A stretch of DNA of 57,031 nucleotides, the filler included, from Bipalium vagum (Eukaryota), in the NCBI GenBank assembly GCA_037834085.1. It is 3 parts of 3 records of this genome, joined end to end, with 100 filler letters (N's around TTAATTAATTAA, not from the genome) between each part and the next. Parts side by side here need not be neighbours in the genome. Positions count along the whole stretch, not along the records: positions 32,862 to 57,031 come from JBBMKC010202494.1; 2 more parts are not named here. One strand, written 5' to 3'. The notes beneath the pieces are model-generated. The model was given only the letters and a program-made list of their open reading frames with translations, had not been told where the DNA came from and did no database searches. Made by a program: the position numbers and the translations under genes. Shown here piece after piece: positions 2,196-55,241 of this stretch. Each line of letters opens with the position of its first letter. Within the stretch, counting starts at the first letter, position 1.

Positions 2196-3349
2196 ATTTT
2201 TCATTATTATCTATAAAAAAATTTCTTACTGCTTATAAAAAGTTATTCAAAATCACGAAAAAGTATGTTAAACGTAATTTATTGTTTATTCACATTTCTT
2301 TTCTTTTAAAGATTTTTCTTCTGTCTGTCATTCCTCAGAATTGATCTTTAGTTTATTAATTATCTTTTTTATTAAAATAAATAAAAACCAAATCAGTTCA
2401 GCTGTCACAAAAGGATAAAAGTAATCCAAATAGATTTTGAAAGGGAAAATAAAAATATGAAGTCATAAATTTAAGATGAATAGGAGCTTTTGTAGTTTGC
2501 CTGTGAAATTCTCATCAATCTTAAGCACTACGAACAGAGGAGTAATTATTCTTTAAGTCTTTACCACAAGATTCCTTGGTAAATGGTGGGGATTTATCAA
2601 GACTATTAATTTTGTTTGATATACAATTATTGATATCTGCTCGAGAGCCGACTTCACTCTCTGTCGGAATATCGACAAGTCTAATCAAACCATTAAATGG
2701 ATATCCGAAATCATTGATCAATCAAAGGAATTAAGTTTCCTCATATCAGAAAGAAATAGTAAATATTAAGCTAGAAACAAACGGTGGAAATTTATTTTCA
2801 ATAATTTCTAAGAAATACTATGGAATAGTACTTCAATGATCCCAATAATACTGTTGCATATAAAACTGATAAACTAATAATGTCTGCAGGTAATTTTATG
2901 TGCAATTTGAAGGGGTTACAATTTTTATTGTTGAAATGATTTAGTTTTTTACGGAATTCTTAATTTGACTCCCCTAACCTAAAATAAAACTGTAATTCTC
3001 AAAAAGTATTTCAGTTGACCATCTTTATTTTAGGTTCTTAAGATATTTAAGTCCTTCAGTTATTTCAAAGAGTGTATATTGAATACTTAAAATATATATA
3101 TTTAAATAAAATTATGTGAAAGGGAACTGTATTACCCCAGATTAACTTTAAGATGAATTTAAGTCTCCTAACTTTTTTTCAGAAATGATACGTAATTAAT
3201 TTTAGCCCGTTGATATTAAAGAGCGGTATTTATCAATTAATATATTCTTGAAAGGTGACATTTAAAGTAAGTTATATATTTATCATAATTAATTAAAACT
3301 TAAAAATAAATTGGAATTTAAAATGTAATTTAATCACATTTTAGTTAAA

Positions 3350-9912: not shown

Positions 9913-11385
9913 TATATATAGGTAAATGTGGGAAATTGTGATAATTTTACTAGTTCATTTTTCTTTGTTTAAATACGTGTAAATGTATTATTTTTTTATT
10001 AATTTCTTATAATTGGATTTTACTTTATTTATTATTATAATTTTATAAATTACATAATTGAAATTATTTTTCGATATCCCCTTATTACTAAACTTTTATT
10101 TTTGATTTTCAATTTTCATTATCATACGTATTTTTAAAGAATATATAAAATCTGCTAATACAAAAAATATTATTGTCTTGTGAGATAACTCTTTCAACAG
10201 ATAATAAAATTTTCAGTTATTATTTTTATGGTAAATTAGAAAAGTTTAATTAGAAAAATTATAACTGAGTAATTAGATAATTTTATAATTTTAAAAGCAA
10301 TCATAACTTTTAGGAGGCTAGAAACGAAGTAATAGATAAGGTCCATATGACAATCATAAGTTTTAAAAGGTTAGTTGTAGTGCATACTTGAAGAAAACTC
10401 TTCTAATTTCTTTTATCTCAATCAGCATTCTTTCTCTGATTATAAAATAGTAATATAATACGTTTTATTAATTTAGATAATATCTCCTATTAAGATTAAT
10501 AACTATAATATCCACTACTTATCTCAATGAGACAAAGTATTCCAATGCTATTTTGTTTCAATCAGTATCTAGAAAGATTTTAATATTTATTAAGGTGTAC
10601 ATCATTAAAGATATCAGATATTGCTATTATTATTGTTTATATATTACTTGATTACCCAAGAGTAAAAAAGTTTTATTTTAAAAAATTAATCTATTTTTTT
10701 GAAAATTGTTTTCTATTTTGACAAATTGATAAAATTAAAAAAATTTTTTTAAGAAACAGAAAAATTTTACTAATTTCTCTTTCCTGTATAATTTGAAGCA
10801 GAAGTTTAATGTTTAAATCTTTCAATATTAAAAATTCTTTATATATTAAATAAATCAAATATCATCATTTTTTTGTTTACATTCATTCTAAATTTTTGTT
10901 TTAATTAATTATCAAAAAAATCGTTTTTAAAACTAAATAAATAATCATTCAATGATTTTGAAACTTTTATTTTGATTATAATATTTTGAAATAATCAGAA
11001 AAAATTGTATAAATTTACAGTAATATCATATATTTTATTATTATAGTTCTTTTAATTGTGAATAAATATAAATTAAAACAATCACAATATTAAAAAATAA
11101 TTTAAAATTTTCTTTTTTTGTAAAATATTTTGAAATCTTAATAAAAATCATTTTCTAAAAAATATAATCGATAATATGCAAAGAATTAAATTTAATAAAG
11201 ATTTCTTCAGATAAAAATATGTTTTTATTTATTTTATATTTAAATAGTTATTGTATTTTAAACAAATATTGTTATATTTGTTGATGTATAATCAGAAATA
11301 AATGATACGATAACAAAATTCCTTATTAATATTTTTTCTCAATAATACATAACTTTTGAGAATTTTAGAGAGATGGATTATTATA

Positions 11386-42100: not shown

Positions 42101-45100
42101 TATTCATGTTTAGTTCATCGCAATAATTGATTTGACTATGTCTCTCTGGCACTGTAAACCAACAGAGAAAAATTGACTGTCGAATTTTTATTTTCCTTTT
42201 TATATGTCAGTTTGAGGATTTAAAATCATAGATCTGTTTCATTTTTACTGCTTTAAGAATGGTCTTTGAGCATGGGGAAAAATTTTAGAATATTTCTAAA
42301 TTTTCATTCATTTATATATGTAATCTTAAATGAAACCTTTAAAAAATTGAACCTATGAATGTTCTTATTATTTTCCTGGAATTTTAAACAACTTGATAAA
42401 TTCCAGAATATTCAAAATAGATTTTATTTATTTATAAATAAAAGGAAAATTAATAAAACTAGTACTGTTGTATATGGTATCAAATAACTTAGTAATAATT
42501 TCGACGATAAATAACTTAGGAACTATGAAAATGATTGATCACATCTTTAAAATTAATCTAATCAATTTAGTTAAAAATTTGATAAACCAAAAAAATTAAC
42601 TTTTGTTTGGTCACTTTTTTATACGGGATACGTACAATACTACAATACCATACAATTTACTTGGGTCTCGGTTTGTTCCATTAACATAATTTGATCCAAA
42701 TTGGATATAATTTATTGTATATTTTCTAAGCTAATCCTTAAAGTTAATAGTTAACTAAACATCAATCAGTTCATATGATAAGAAAACTTGGCTGAAGTAA
42801 ATTTCGACCAATTACCATAGTTGAATTTACTTACTATTATTAGTTTAAAAATTATCCTTTTTGGTTTTTGATTTCTATGAAATTCAACTTCTCATAAAAA
42901 TTACTGTTTTTTATTTAGTTAATATCAGTTTTTTTTTTGTTTTGATTTTTAAATTTGCTTTCTTTCAGGTGGTGTGGATATGATCCGACTAGGAGAATCT
43001 GTTATTGAATATTCTAAAGATTTTCGACTTTATATCACAACAAAATTGAGAAACCCACACTATCTCCCGGAAATAGCCGTCAAAGTTTCTTTACTTAACT
43101 TTATGATTACCATTGAGGGTCTGGAAGATCAGTTATTGGGCATTGTGGTAGCTAAAGAAAAGTGATTAATTACTCGTTCAAGATATCCGTATACTTTTAC
43201 CATTTTCTTTCTTTAAATTCAAGACCCGAACTGGAAGATGCCAGACAAGAATTGATTATTACAAGTGCCAACAATCGTCGAATGTTAAAGGAAACTGAAG
43301 ATAGGATTCTGGCAACTTTGTCAGAAGCAGAAGGAAACATTCTCGAAAATGAAACCGCCATTCAAATTCTAGACAGTTCCAAAGCAATTTCCAATGATAT
43401 TCTTAAAAAGCAAGAGGTTGGAAAAGAATCATGAAAGGAAATTAGTATTGAAAAATTATCTTTTTCTTATAGACGGCTGAGGAGACTCAAAAGAAAATTG
43501 ATGCTGCTCGAATGGATTACGCTCCAATTGCTCGACATTCAGCGATTCTCTTCTTTTCCATCACCGACTTACCGAATATTGATCCTATGTATCAATATTC
43601 TTTGTCGTGGTTTGTAAATCTTTACATTAATTCCATTCATGACAGGTACAATTTTCTAATCATTACTGATTTTGATTTCATAAATCTTTGATAAACAACT
43701 TTGAATCGAAAATTTTCACTGACCTAATTTATTCTTAAAATCATTTTACCCCAAAATATCAATATAAAGCAATATTTCATTTTAAGATAAATAAGAGAAG
43801 ACTGAATAATTTACAAAAAACAATTTTTCAGTTATACATAATAATGAAACTGACATTCTCCTGCTAGAAATCTCTTAAAGGTGTAACATGGGACTTAATG
43901 GCTTAATTTAATTTAGTGTTATTGTATTCTGTTTACATGGTGATGTATAATTCTGGGTGTTTTAAGAAGGATATTCTTCAGAAAAAAACTCATTTTACTT
44001 TTGTTAATGTTTTTCATTTGAACCGTGAGATTTTGGGATTGATTTATTTAACAATTTTTCTAGACCACCTTATCTTCCATTCGATTTCTGTCAATTTTCA
44101 CATTTATTTAAATTTCAATATAAAAAATATTCATACTATTAAAATCCTTTAATATTTTAAAACAAGAAATCTAAAACCAGTAAATCTATAAGGAAATAGA
44201 TTTAGCCTTTTGAAGTCTGTTTGGAAAATGAACTTTTTTGTTATAAATTTTGTTTAAAATAATATAGGTTTTAATTTTTTTAATAAGAATAAAATATATT
44301 TTATGATTCAGCAAAGATGAAGTGTTAATTGCATTATTATGATTTAAATAGGTTTAATAAAATATTCACTTTTGAATTTAAATCTGTTAAATTTCAAATA
44401 AATCTATAATTCGATATCTACCTAAGTACATGTTAACTTCTTTACACTTGGAGTGCAAAATTTAAAATTTCGCGCAGTTATTGGGTAATTATTTAAAAAT
44501 GATTATCAGAAAAGAAGTTCATATAGAATTTTTTATAATTATAATTATTTATAATAATAATTATAATAATTATAATAATTATAATTATAAATGTGTTGGC
44601 TGAATGGGTTTCTTCACATATCAGAGTGAAAATTTGGATCACTGAATTCAAAAACGGTCGTAAATCAACTGAAAATGATTTATGCAGTAATAGTCCCAAA
44701 ATTGTGTCAACAACAATTATTGACTACATCCATATTGTTAGTGGAACACAAGAACTAACGAAATATATCACATAAAGAAAATCTCTAATGAATACATACC
44801 TCTTATTTTGAAACATGAATTATATATAAAAGGATTTTTGGAAAACTAGTTATTGCATTCATTTTAAGACATATGAAAAGATTTTCATAAATAGTGTTAG
44901 AAAAATTTAAAGAAAAATCAAATTGATTTTTTGTCCATTTTCTTACCTACCAACAAGACATGTTTCTAAATTATAACAGGCACTGTTGTAGCGCATAGAA
45001 ATTGAATGTTCAGCTCCGAAGCATCTAAAGAGAGAACGATCAGTGAGAAAGGTTATGGCAACCGTTTTATGGGAAAGGTAAAACAATCAAATTTGATTAT

Positions 45101-48100
45101 TACTTTAAAATATTGGATCAGTTCATAAAAAGATTCGTATAAGAAGATCTAGAGGAATAAATGTCATCAAGAAAATACGCCAGGTCACCAAGTGCATTAG
45201 CAATGGTAAAGCTGAACACACGAAATTACGAAGAAAATAAACATCCCTCATATTCTCTAAACTTTGATCCCAGCAAATTTTATCTTTTCCGAAACCTTAA
45301 GCTTTTTCATCAAATGAAGCTATAGTAGTTTTAGAGTATTCTTATGGATATCTTCCAGAAATGTTTTTTAGACGTGGATTTGAATTAATGGAGAAGCATT
45401 GGACTAAGTCTGAAGAATTTTCAGGAAATTATTTTTATGAATAAATGTACTTTCGAGATATCCTTTCATTTCTTGGCCAAAGACTTTTCGCGTAATTTAT
45501 ATGTTAAAATTTAACACTGAATTTAAGAAGTGAGACAATGAAAAGTCAGTCAAAATAATAATTCCGTTTGTTTTTCATTTATAATTCTAAAGGAATACAG
45601 GGAAATATTAAAAACTGAAATTTTCAACTTGGGAAAATAATTTTAAAATGTGTCTGTGAGAAAGATTTTATTTTCGATTCAAAGTGATTTCCAGAGAAAT
45701 GTTCCCCCAATCACCATTATTCCTATTTAGCAATAAATCTAAAATCCTCGAGAGGAGATCTAGATATTTAAAAGACCATTTCCAATATAACATTTATGAG
45801 AATGTCTGCAGATCACTTTTTGCCAAAGATAAATTATTGTTTTCCTTCAAGTTATGTGTCGACCTTATGATGTGAGTAGAAGCAAAATGGTCATAGAGAC
45901 CAATTGATCGCTATCACTGTTATTATAGTCCGGCTTCATTGATTGTGTAATTATACGATATGCATATATTCAATTTTTCAAAACTTAGTTTTATATATTG
46001 ATTTATTTTCACATTTATTATTGATTTTCGATAATTGAATAATATCCATTTATCATTAGTCTCAACATTTGATGGTCAATTTTTTTTCATTTGCAGCAAC
46101 AAATCGAAAATATTGGAAAAAAGATTGCGATATCTGAGTGACCATTTTACCTTTAGTCTTTACTCTAATGTTTGTCGATCCTTATTTGAAAAGGACAAGC
46201 TTTTGTTCTCGTTTATTTTGTGCAGTAAAATCTTAATGTTAGTTTTTTTAACAGTACTCATGCGGTGTCTAACGTTTTACTCAAGTTTCGTTTGCCTTTC
46301 GTTTCCCTTGTTCATGCTTTTATTTGCTTAGCGTTTTTTATTAGTCTTAATAATTTTAATGTAACAATATTTACCATTTCAGGTTCCAGGTATTTTTTTA
46401 ACTTTATTAACCTAAGAATGAGAGATGAATAAATAATGGATTGAAAAATATTTATCTTGAAATATCAAATACATTATTTTGAAACTTGTACCGTCGTTTA
46501 TGTTTCCAAAAATAGTTTATGAGCATTCTTTATCCCAGCATTCAATTTGCACACTTAACAAAAAAAGAATTATGGCGATGCCATTCTCAGTATGTGCGGT
46601 TTAATTTATTTTGAAGTGGTCAAAAGGTAACCCATCATGTATCCTAAGTATCGAACAAGTGTGAAAAACCTAATACAATACATCAAAGAGTTATTTTAGT
46701 TATTTTTATAACTAATTGTCAGTACTAAAAGTAAACTAAGTCTCTTTATGTCTATTAATTTTAAAAATTTTATAAATCAGAATTTTTAATGAAAATCTGG
46801 AACATATTTGTTTAGAGACTTGAATATTTTTTTATTCTCCTTTGATAGTTTGATGAAGATAATTTATATTTCAAAAAATATATATAAATACATGAATATT
46901 ATCATTAAGCATAAAATTTATCTCTCATTCTTACAGTCCTTTTATTGATTTACTTAAACAAAATCATTGACCGGTGCAATTTTTGAAAAAATGATTCTCT
47001 CTTTCATTTTATATGTTGATAATTTCTGCTTATTTTTCAAAATATCGATTAATATTACTAACTTGTTTTTTAATTGAATTGAGCTATGAGAATTAATAAA
47101 AATCCAAATTTGATTTCATTTTAAGAAAGTCTAGAAATTTAGTATATTATATTTTATATTTGTTATAAATCGTAATATTCCAGAGATTTGTAATTTTTTC
47201 TCTTAAAATTTCCTTTAAAATAAATTTTCAACAGATTGACTGCCGGGCGAATTTAATTTTCCATTGAAACTAACCACGTGTGCATTCGCTAGACGACAGC
47301 ATATAACTATTGTTGTCTGAGGTCAAAATATTTTTCTCAATTTAGAATATAACGCTATACAGATAGGAACGTGGGTGTTCATCCCTATGGCAAAACGTTG
47401 ATTAACACGGCTCGCTTAGATTTACTTTAGATCATTGAACATATTAGTTAGGAGATCTGAGTATTGAAATGTTTAAAGTCAAATTAAAAAGTATAAATAA
47501 TTAATATTTATTTAATAAATTTAACCTTAAAATAATAATATAAAATATTATTTTAAAATTAAATTAATTTATAAATAAGTAAATAACACACGAAAGTGGT
47601 CGATTGTAAAATAATAATAAAATATTAATTTAAAAAACTTTCTTTAGTTTGCCGGTCGATGGTTCCTTGGTTTATTTATTAATTCATCAAAAATATTCCA
47701 AGTCTATAATAATTTGAAAATAGAAATCTTATACAGGTCTAAAGGCGAGCTGGATAATACTGAATATCTATTTCTTCTCACTGGAGGGATTGGTCTGGAG
47801 AACAAATTACCTAATCCAGCTCCGAGTTGGTTGTCAGACAAGTCGTGGGACGAAATTTGTCGACTGAGTGATTTGAAAGAATTCAAAGGTCTTAAAGAAA
47901 GTTTCAGCGATCATATCAACGACTGGAGGAACTATTACGACAGTAAAGAACCACACGATGTTAAGATGCCCGACCCATGGGGTATAAAATTGGACTCTTT
48001 CAAAAGTTTGATTGTTCTGCGTTGCATAAGACCGGACAAGGTAACGATTTCAAGGAATTTAAAATAAAGTAATTTTTACACCAGATTGTGCCGGCCATCA

Positions 48101-53000: not shown

Positions 53001-55241
53001 TTAATACTAAAACACTACTTACAATTAGAAGTAGTTAAAATATTTTAAAAATTATAATTTTTTTTAATTAGGGGCCTAAACTGCAGGATTACCTCCTTTT
53101 GTTATATATGTCGAATTTTTATGATTTCAAAGCAGAGAAAACATGTTACTTTTTCAGTCAATTTTCTTTATTTTGTATGTTCAAAGTGCATTTTTCAATG
53201 AAAAAAATTGAGAAAAGATTAAAATGACAAGATTACCATTGAGATTCCGATGATGAGAATTCAGAAAACTCTATCAGCGAGATTGCAGATGTTGGAGACA
53301 TCCTTGGTGAAGATGACCAGTTTATACGATAAGGAGAAAACCTGCCAAAATTATTTAACCAAATGACATAGAGATTTAAATTTATCCAAGGAAAGCGATC
53401 AGGTTTTGGTTTTACGACTAAAGCAAAAAAACTTGCTAGCAAATTTCAAAACCTTTTCATGGTATAAACATAAAGAAAATCAGTACCTGAAACATTTTTG
53501 CAAAATGGAAGTGGCTTCTGTTCTATAACTGTGGCTTACTTATATAGGCTGAAGGAAAATTGTGAAAACTTTAAATATATTTTGATAGTCCTAAAGTGCA
53601 ACATGTATAATTTTTTAATATGCAGAGATTTCAAGGTAAGATGGATTATGCTAGGATAACAAGGTGAAAACACAAAATATCCGTGGTTTCTGTGTGAATA
53701 GGACATTTCATTGGGAGAAAGCGAATGGACACCCAGAAATAATCATATGTCGAAAAATATTTTAAATGAAATTTTAGTAGCATCATCAAATGTATTATTG
53801 CTGTCTCTGCAATTTATAAAAGCTTTAGATAAAACCTACCCTTGCTTCGTATATATCTACGAAGTTTTTCAAAACCTTTCTAAAAAAAAAGAAGCTGGTA
53901 TTTTCACAAGAAGAGATATAAATGATTTCAATTTCATTAAAACGATGTCCACCTCTGAAAATAATGCTTGGATAACTTTCAAAAATATTTCCGAAAATTT
54001 TTACCAATTAAAAAGAATTGATGAGAATATTGTTGCGAAATATTTCCTGAACAATTTTGGTGACTATAGTGAAGAACAAGGCGAAAAGTTTCACCAAGAC
54101 ATTATGGATTTTGGGAAAAGATACCAAGGGAAGTGTGACATAACCATGCTATCCGATTATTTCTAGTGTTTAAAAAGAGATATGGGCACTGACAGGACAA
54201 ATAGTTTCATAATCCCTTGATATCCAAATTTTTCCTTTTTATATCAAAGACATCAAGTCAAATTAAAATATACGTAATTTAAACAAATGAATTCTTAATA
54301 TTTCATCCTTAATGTTTTTCATCGGGATACTTTTTTCATTGCCACACATTTCTTGAACCACTAGGCAAAAACTATTGAACCTTGGTTGAGACGTATTACC
54401 ACATTTACCATGTAAACCAGACCTCTCTCCTTCCGAATGCCATTTGCTTTACTCTGTGCAAAACTTCTTCAATGACAAACCTTTAATATGATGACGTTTA
54501 ACCAAATTTAAACCCAAAGGGGTTTTATAAACTATGAATTTTTTATTCTTCCTGGAAGATGAAAGCAGACCCTTGATAAACATAGGCAATTCATAATTTT
54601 ATAAAAATATATTCTTTCATATAGTTTCATATCTTTTGTTTCTTCAAAGAAATCGGTATTTACTTGCAAACTCAATATCAGTTTTCACAATAATTGATTT
54701 TCAAAGATGCTTGTAACGAAAAGATTGGATTTTCGAGATTCAGTACTATTTTATAAAACCTTTATTTTATTTTAAAAACATTAATTATAATTCACATTAG
54801 TTTGAATTCCATGAATTTTGGATCTATATTTATCGACTTATCACTGTAATTTTAAAAATGTTAAATAATTCAGTTAGTTAATTTTCTGATTTTAATCAAT
54901 TATCAACGTAACGGGAAAACATGATGTACCGATTTTAATTCTTTCTTCAACGTCATTGAGAATGATAAATAAATTTCAGAATGAAATTGGGTGAGCAAAA
55001 GCCAAAGGTATTGTATGAGGCTGTTCCTATAATCTGGTTAAAGCCTGCCAAAAGGGACGACATTGACATTTCGGATAACCGCTACAGATGTCCCGTATAT
55101 AAAACTAGCGAAAGAAAGGGAGTTTTATCCACTACGGGTCACTCAACAAACTTCGTTTTGCCAATCTATCTACCAACAAATGAACCAGTCAGCCATTGGG
55201 TCAAGCGTGGAACTGCACTCTTATGTCAATTAGATGATTAA
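33200..55241 (+). CDS. DNAH12: Axonemal inner-arm dynein heavy chain, DNAH12-like, 5'-partial (end of AAA2 to C-terminus)
   Basis: In-frame GT-AG exons: 33200-33703, 33748-34035, 34747-34913, 34968-35160, 35218-35498, 35555-35639, 36661-36839, 36963-37155, 38683-39039, 39753-40006, 40617-41816, 41880-42094, 42969-43161, 43224-43416, 43473-43645, [45731-45871 or 46097-46237], 47737-48040, 48085-48489, 48600-48740, 48800-49171, 49691-49980, 50086-50290, 50338-50475, 51388-51479, 54980-55241 (TAA). Motifs: [14 protein letters not shown]3 P-loop [11 protein letters not shown]4 GVGGSGRQS, stalk/MTBD, AAA5 RWPLMIDPQ, AAA6 [22 protein letters not shown], terminal [10 protein letters not shown]...[21 protein letters not shown] and the LCQLDD terminus recall DNAH12 rather than DNAH3/7; the paralog call is from memory. 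Confidence 0.93.
37560..37790 (+). mobile_element. DD41D (rosa-like) transposase fragment in a dynein intron
   Basis: [14 protein letters not shown]...[10 protein letters not shown]...LIGPYF matches the NKQNxRIW...LHPQKVTVWC...IIGPYFF signature. Confidence 0.65.
44440..45500 (+). mobile_element. Decayed mariner (Himar1/irritans-like) in the dynein intron just upstream of the duplicated exons
   Basis: [54 protein letters not shown] and EKHWTK...GNY remnants, with many stops and an inserted (ATA)n tract. Confidence 0.72.
45731..45871 (+). CDS. DNAH12: Dynein alternative exon A (141 nt, phase 2-2)
   Basis: Acceptor tcctatttag, donor GTGAGT; encodes (S)[46 protein letters not shown](M). Confidence 0.85.
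46097..46237 (+). CDS. DNAH12: Dynein alternative exon B (141 nt, phase 2-2)
   Basis: Acceptor ttcatttgcag, donor GTTAGT; encodes (S)[46 protein letters not shown](M). Confidence 0.9.
47264..47410 (+). ncRNA. Candidate intronic box H/ACA-like structured RNA
   Basis: Hairpin, then AGAATA (ANANNA, 47344-47349), then hairpin, then ACA (47405-47407), over about 147 nt on the sense strand of a dynein intron. Folded by eye only. Confidence 0.3.
52030..52400 (+). mobile_element. Mariner transposase fragment in the last dynein intron
   Basis: ITGDGK-like segment near 52190 followed by [13 protein letters not shown]. Confidence 0.55.
52660..54185 (+). mobile_element. Decayed Sola2-like DNA transposase, interrupted by the MITE
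   Basis: N-terminal KRNV/C...SFCYIC split by the MITE, then ICRDFKV...[28 protein letters not shown] and [17 protein letters not shown]...RYQGKCD..MLSDY. The family label is from remembered motifs. Confidence 0.65.
52694..53073. mobile_element. MITE/foldback element (380 bp) with long terminal inverted repeats
   Basis: CCCTAATTAAAAAAAA...AATATTTTAACTACTTCTAATTGTAAGTAGTGTTTTAGTATTAATTAATATTTTTAAAA at the left is mirrored by its reverse complement ending ...TTTTTTAATTAGGG. Arms are about 130-150 bp; no clear TSD. Confidence 0.85.
54320..54600 (+). mobile_element. Mariner transposase 3' fragment
   Basis: [31 protein letters not shown], a degenerate HPPYSPDLAPSDYHLF. Confidence 0.6.

Follow-up and report, generated by a model that had tools for sequence, protein, structure and literature searches.

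The window analysed here, a stretch of 57,031 nucleotides (nt) of joined parts from Bipalium vagum (assembly GCA_037834085.1), holds in its piece 32862-57031 (record JBBMKC010202494.1) the 3′ half of a plus-strand gene for a dynein heavy chain. The 3′ limit of the gene lies at 55241 and its N-terminal half falls outside the piece. In the motor-domain part of the gene, two adjacent homologous exons, termed A and B, stand between two constitutive exons. Most probably they form a conserved cluster of mutually exclusive exons (MXEs).

Structure of the gene and of the exon pair

On the plus strand, the Pfam domains follow each other in the order AAA_9 (AAA5), Dynein_heavy D6 P-loop domain and Dynein_C; the stalk exon has its matches in PF12777 clusters. 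DNAH12 (8j07_g1 and 9fqr_PW; human or mammalian) was the top solved match for four separate exons, above DNAH7 and DNAH3. By this similarity ranking, as opposed to a class-wide phylogeny, the gene is assigned as an orthologue of the DNAH12-type single-headed inner-arm dynein heavy chains (DHC7 class of Kollmar).

The upstream constitutive exon ends at 43645 in front of a phase 2 intron (GAC AG/GTACAA), leaving two codon bases over, and the downstream constitutive exon opens at 47737 with one codon base (CAG/G TCT AAA). Exons A and B each consist of 1 nt, 46 full codons and 2 nt, are likewise flanked by phase 2 introns and are free of stop codons, and A alone or B alone connects 43645 to 47737 with the reading frame kept. 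The same residue is encoded at 32 of the 46 codons, and at 23 of these 32 the codon differs. Overall, the two exons are 70% identical in amino acids and 60% in nucleotides, while the 60 nt of intron flanking A and B are 32-33% identical, which is background. Among the 259 stop-to-stop segments on the plus strand of the piece, A and B are the sole paralogous pair (blastp E=3e-22). Donors found beside five alignment ends elsewhere in the gene, which are not mapped exon ends, read GTACAC, GTTTTC, GTACGG, GTACAA and GTTATT.

The position of the pair in the protein can be read from the solved human DNAH12. Exon B aligns with residues 3179-3224 at 71 bits. The upstream exon reaches residue 3177, residues 3178-3225 correspond to the alternative exon, and the downstream exon follows from 3226, its alignment opening at its second residue, 3227. 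By this colinearity, solved DNAH12 leaves space for exactly one 47-residue unit between the flanking exons. The unit lies past Pfam AAA_9 and ahead of the D6 P-loop domain, and from general dynein architecture we take it to be the AAA5 small domain after the strut/buttress hairpin, a packed helical lid. The pair displays several of the features by which Pillmann, Hatje and Kollmar recognise MXEs, namely neighbouring internal exons of equal length between constitutive exons, matching phase, intact splice sites, and homology combined with the same structural element, both copies aligning with DNAH12 3179-3224.

The A/B pair is real DNA and no assembly artefact, because an independent assembly of a DNA run yielded one 3,960-nt contig over 44600-48500 that spans both copies without a single difference and at single-copy depth (~23). 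An artefact of assembly or collapse, or a functionless duplication of very recent date, would have to explain this contig as well as the 60% nucleotide identity of the copies with their saturated synonymous sites and the presence of the pair in other lineages, and we assign it a negligible chance. An earlier note on this DNA had described two stop-free 141-nt exons, 225 nt apart, with phase 2-2 and AG/GT sites, in a DNAH12-like gene. It had stated that either copy alone joins 43645 to 47737 in frame, had given the counts of shared residues and synonymous differences quoted above, and had considered that one copy could be an assembly artefact. Our re-reading of the sequence and the exon boundaries agrees with this description, the counts were reproduced, DNAH12 was the best solved match for every exon tested, and the possible artefact is contradicted by the independent contig. 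Its further remark that the donors of the gene are mostly weak was compared with the five sequences beside alignment ends given above.

The exon cluster in orthologues

The frame of exon A, searched against a protein collection, led to short genomic open reading frames (ORFs) from other organisms, some of them with the unusual A residues (Q at exon position 18, E or D at 23, and A in place of E at 31). A profile built from six A-type exons (alignment A1) and run against 1.84 billion representatives recovered more A-types, and the copies were located on the contigs of other loci with tblastn. In this way the A/B cluster was found in DNAH12-like orthologues of at least six other lineages (Table 1). 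Wherever the contig reaches far enough, an A-type copy comes first and a B-type copy after it. Every copy in these lineages that lies wholly on its contig is 141 nt long and has the same phase, an AG acceptor and a GT[AG]AGT donor. The A-B introns at these loci measure 157-1590 nt. A-type exons of further species are present on short contigs (L004-6, L007, L008, P0016, P0017, P0039, P0159).

Across the loci, the flanking constitutive exons show 58-90% protein identity and identical boundaries. For the upstream exon the protein identity is 72-80% in L001, L003, L007, L009, L012, L015 and L016 and 61% in L013/L014, and its end point is the same in all loci compared. The copy number of the alternative exon thus varies from one to three among orthologues while the flanks stay colinear. 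On this comparison, the A/B pair appears to predate the split of at least seven sequence lineages, and its conservation in orthologues is the strongest RNA-free evidence that A is a used alternative exon.

Two lineages, L016 and L013/L014, have a single copy. In L016, the intron of 1,163 nt yielded no match to A at thresholds as loose as E<=1. The gene of L013/L014 is compact and rich in GC and has one exon copy (L013 1048-1188, L014 890-1030); this copy is B-like overall yet carries alanine at position 31 as in the A-type, reflecting either a second independent origin or a remnant of a lost pair.

Table 1. Exons and candidate stem arms in the window, and exon copies at orthologous loci
Locus	Feature	Position	Strand	Remarks
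Window	Upstream constitutive exon	43473-43645	+	End of strut/buttress region and start of AAA5 small domain; start approximate
Window	Candidate stem, left arm	43688-43722	+	43-77 nt past upstream donor
Window	Candidate stem, right arm	45647-45691	+	40-84 nt before exon A acceptor
Window	Exon A (A-type)	45731-45871	+	141 nt, 47 residues; AG at 45729-45730; donor GTGAGT
Window	A-B intron	45872-46096	+	225 nt
Window	Exon B (B-type)	46097-46237	+	141 nt; AG at 46095-46096; donor GTTAGT; U-rich acceptor tract
Window	Downstream constitutive exon	47737-48040	+	End of AAA5 small domain into AAA6; donor AAG/GTAACG
L003	Copies A, B			
L001/L002 and L012	Copies A, B1, B2			
L009/L010	Copies A, C, B			C is a divergent middle copy
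L011	Copies A, B			B runs past contig end
L015	Copies A, B			

Further variation was seen around the B-type exon. L001 (11809-12160) and L012 (11734-12083) have a second, younger duplication of the B-type into B1 and B2, with a synonymous divergence (dS) of ~1.2. The B1-B2 intron is 70 nt long in L001 and 68 nt in L012, close to the steric limit for splicing of B1 to B2, and its 3′ half is 83-97% conserved between the two genomes. Copy C of L009 (6756-6896; same in L010; assembly GCA_013332975.1) is strongly diverged, although 141 nt long, stop-free and bounded by AG and GTAAGT. Protein fragments from some relatives show the B-type exon continuous with its upstream neighbour (P0012) or its downstream neighbour (P0023, P0036), the intron on that side being absent; no space is left there for an alternative copy. 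P0116 (448 amino acids) is a spliced-looking fragment with recognisable flanks around a highly diverged form of the 46 residues and may be a distinct paralogue that evolves fast. The exon peptide of P0021 is identical to human DNAH12 3179-3224, and its contig may be human or primate.

Age, selection and residue signature

A maximum-likelihood tree of 55 exon peptides (46 columns; P0021 left out) united the 11 A-types in one clade with an ultrafast bootstrap (UFboot) of 88 and a Shimodaira-Hasegawa-like approximate likelihood ratio test (SH-aLRT) of 90, which is moderate support given 46 columns. B-types grouped with the single-copy orthologues. A purely positional definition of the A-type as the first copy in its cluster is independent of the tree and agreed with the clade for all six first-position copies (6/6); the first-position copy of L015, found after the tree, has Q18 and A31.

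Between lineages the synonymous sites are saturated, the proportion of synonymous differences (pS) being >=0.57 (>=0.7 for most pairs) and that of non-synonymous differences (pN) 0.10-0.29. The informative pair for selection is that of the sibling genomes L001 and L012, with a dS of 0.23-0.33. Exon A differs between them by eight synonymous and three non-synonymous changes, corresponding to a ratio of non-synonymous to synonymous divergence (dN/dS, omega) of 0.086 (binomial p=4e-4), comparable to omega in B1 (0.08) and B2 (0). In global alignments of the same two genomes, identity reaches 92% in exon A, 91% in the upstream exon, 93% in B1 and 96% in B2, whereas the long introns are 42-50% identical. 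Because of the low omega and the high exon identity as compared with the introns, exon A is judged to be an old coding exon kept by selection and not a dead duplicate. Conservation between L001 and L012 extends to the intron sequence adjoining the alternative exons, as is common around regulated exons.

The B-type is close to the consensus of DNAH12, DNAH7 and DNAH3. In all A-type copies the glutamate of the LFEKDK motif is replaced by alanine (A31). Glutamine instead of threonine at position 18 occurs in all A-types but L011, an acidic residue (E/D) at position 23 in all A-types except those of L009 and L015, and most have a basic residue at position 14. Taken together, the A-type differences shift charge to other places on the helices. 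Only exon A of this genome has S10 and K40, nearly all other copies being hydrophobic there; the two residues reflect either lineage-specific adaptation or a hint of relaxed constraint.

These results bear on the remaining claims of the earlier note. Its old duplication is borne out by the A-type clade, the pair in other lineages and the saturated synonymous sites, and the tblastn comparison with related DNAH12 loci that it had proposed uncovered the clusters of Table 1. Purifying selection on both copies holds between L001 and L012, and exon A of these two genomes lacks the dN/dS near 1 that the note had named, together with missing junction reads, as the mark of a dead copy. The proximity of B to the family consensus agrees with the grouping of B-types and single-copy orthologues. 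Of the non-conservative changes that it had listed for exon A, E>A at position 31 proved to be an A-type feature, whereas L>S at position 10 and I>K at position 40 are restricted to this genome. Overall, its reading of the pair as a candidate for mutually exclusive splicing is partly supported.

A recent silencing of exon A in this genome, leaving B alone in the mRNA while the alternative exon is conserved elsewhere, would be in line with S10 and K40, which stand where almost every other A- or B-type copy has a hydrophobic residue, and with the loss of the pair in the lineages with one copy (L016, L013/L014). Against this, the ORF, the length, the AG acceptor and the consensus GTGAGT donor of exon A are all intact. 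Its terminal branch (0.14) is near those of other A-types (0.09-0.11), and the acceptor region of exon A takes part in the strongest long-range RNA pairing of the piece. We therefore consider recent silencing rather unlikely.

Inclusion of the exon copies

One-unit colinearity together with unchanged flanks makes the use of one copy out of n the natural reading. In each mRNA, the AAA5 small-domain helices after the strut/buttress would then be supplied by one of the two 47-residue versions, and two motor isoforms would result: B, the ancestral form near the family consensus, and A, which is derived and was fixed long ago. The changes of A in surface and charge may tune the coupling between ring, strut and stalk or a contact with a partner, and this tuning might serve different cilia or different axonemal positions.

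Alternatively, A and B could both be included, or A could be a cassette added to B, giving rise to a repeated 47-residue unit in AAA5. Since 141 equals 3 x 47, double inclusion would keep the frame, as would double skipping; the A-B intron is of ordinary, splicable length, and no enforcing mechanism was found. In contrast, solved DNAH12 and every other matched dynein heavy chain have exactly one unit, orthologues carry one, two or three copies between unchanged flanks, and the unit corresponds to a conserved core helix pair of the AAA+ lid domain. Among the 150 profile matches listed, two matched stretches occurred in no long protein and only in a 140-amino-acid fragment. Moreover, in some 40% of the MXE clusters of human the exon lengths are likewise divisible by three (PMC5740500). 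That all copies are constitutively included is unlikely because of the one-unit colinearity, the variable copy number and the packed AAA+ lid, and a repeated unit arising in either way appears to us quite improbable.

Several observations weigh against mutually exclusive splicing of A and B. The sole public run with the locus is not recorded as RNA, and its contigs show the genomic form only. A-type sequences were always found as genomic ORFs with intron read-through and never joined to their neighbours. Searches with the exon A ORF (35-110 amino acids), the A-type profile (1.84 billion representatives) and P0018 (76-241 amino acids) gave genomic ORFs only and no spliced A-type fragment among proteins of 35-241 amino acids or profile matches, a null result that is not evidence of absence as long proteins are hidden by clustering at 50% or 90%. 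The radical replacements S10 and K40 may mean relaxed constraint in this lineage.

The same holds for the search for an enforcing mechanism. A length divisible by three means that exclusivity is not imposed by the frame; steric hindrance would require a shorter A-B intron, and the donors of A and B are U2-type and not U12. Frameshift, steric hindrance and U12 splice sites were thus all negative, and RNA pairing was strong for A only, and before exon B the candidate docking site pairs weakly (−10.5 kcal/mol, rank 401 of 4,802, i.e. background). Nevertheless, the missing mechanism is a gap in the evidence and not a contradiction, because about 40% of human MXE clusters have lengths divisible by three as well, and many validated ones are likewise without a known mechanism (PMC5740500).

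Apparent joints in the contigs of the public run were rejected as splice junctions, being short, repeat-driven matches with sides of 20-26 nt.

Intronic RNA structure and motifs

The two arms listed in Table 1 form a candidate stem with a 16-nt perfect core and a duplex energy of −24.7 kcal/mol, which ranks first of 4,802 scanned windows in the 24-kb piece (mean −6.8, standard deviation 2.6; next unrelated window −17.8). The stem is known from this species alone, other lineages being too diverged for a conservation test; crude duplex scans in L001, L012, L009, L003, L011 and L007 gave nothing above shuffles. Its formation would enclose some 1.9 kb of the intron (2,085 nt) in a loop and, speculatively, may bring the upstream donor beside the acceptor of exon A and thereby favour A. 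The stem may thus be an intron-looping element favouring A, or a relic inverted repeat. An origin from terminal repeats of a transposable element is not supported, because both arms are at single-copy depth.

Competing RNA structures between a docking site and selectors are reportedly responsible for the choice among the Dscam exon 6 variants, as Graveley is said to have described in 2005. Such structures also occur in 14-3-3zeta and Mhc. As in these systems, strong pairing in the Bipalium gene connects a site past the constitutive donor with a site before a variable exon; unlike in these systems, only exon A has a significant partner. The docking/selector model was therefore rejected as it stands.

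Steric hindrance is the basis of exclusivity in exons 2 and 3 of alpha-tropomyosin. The B1-B2 gap of L001 and L012 (70/68 nt) is near the limit for this mechanism, which is not applicable to the A/B pair with its 225 nt in the window and 157-1590 nt elsewhere. In human MXE clusters, a distance of less than 50 nt between donor and branch point is found in 9% of cases (PMC5740500).

Some sequence motifs were also recorded. The 9-mer ATTTTCGAT or its complement occurs at 43705, 45670, 46024, 46103 and 51067, i.e. five times as against about one expected. Four of the five sites lie in the alternative-exon region at similar distances before A and B; the site at 46024 is 73 nt before exon B, and the complement lies in the first codons of exon B. 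TGCATG, an RBFOX-type motif, is conserved 10-11 nt past the exon A donor in L001 (10229) and L012 (10195), and a second TGCATG (L001 10889, L012 10807) lies in a conserved island of the A-B1 intron. No GCATG was present in the exon cluster of the window; RBFOX-type motifs are therefore no general feature. The A-B1 intron also contains a conserved hairpin of 15-16 bp (L001 ~10650-10665 with 10845-10861; same in L012), in which one difference between L001 and L012 turns a G-C pair into G-U.

Intronic repeats at 44288-44471, 44529-44599 and 47416-47783 reach a contig depth of up to 238x and 355x, compared with ~23x elsewhere, and an AT-rich simple repeat among them is the break point of the independent contigs. 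The last intron contains a 151-amino-acid open frame (53711-54166, plus strand) without a Pfam match; its tail may resemble transposon-derived proteins.

Discussion

Mutually exclusive exons in a dynein motor domain have a precedent in the cytoplasmic DHC1 of Schistosoma mansoni (Pillmann et al. 2011, PMC3228551), which Kollmar cites in noting that some DHC genes have alternative splice forms of the motor domain (Kollmar 2016, PMC5100056). As in the Bipalium gene, the DHC1 cluster consists of two homologous exons of equal length with split codons at both ends, and exclusivity was deduced from colinearity with thousands of dyneins and not from the reading frame. In contrast to the cytoplasmic DHC1, the gene presented here belongs by its matches to the axonemal single-headed inner-arm DNAH12/DHC7 class, and its cluster is conserved across many lineages with two to three copies. 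Our literature search found no mutually exclusive exons described in axonemal or DNAH12-type dyneins.

A functional parallel exists in another motor. In arthropod Mhc, mutually exclusive exons tune motor kinetics by tissue. There, as would be the case here, short structural elements of the motor domain are swapped between isoforms. Mhc belongs to a different motor family and has several clusters as opposed to one, and the use and effects of its isoforms are proven, whereas those of the dynein forms are deduced.

The diversity of axonemal dyneins is commonly attributed to the number of genes. Alternative exons conserved within the motor ring of one inner-arm dynein would mean that splicing contributes to it as a second layer. 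It is conceivable, though doubtful at present, that the A/B(/C) cluster is an ancient animal route to extra single-headed inner-arm isoforms from one DNAH12-type gene, which would predate several lineage splits and have been lost in some lineages including that of human. The isoforms might then occupy different positions of the 96-nm repeat or different cilia (sperm versus epithelial or sensory), with E31A and the acidic swap at position 23 as the functional switch. According to Kollmar, the DHC7 genes of metazoans are too few to fill the single-headed positions (PMC5100056); if true, isoforms from one gene would provide an answer to this point.

In practical terms, gene models of DNAH12 orthologues may silently drop the A and B exons or wrongly concatenate them. 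For the motor itself, the 47-residue element beside the strut, with its defined residue signature, would represent a candidate natural tuning site.

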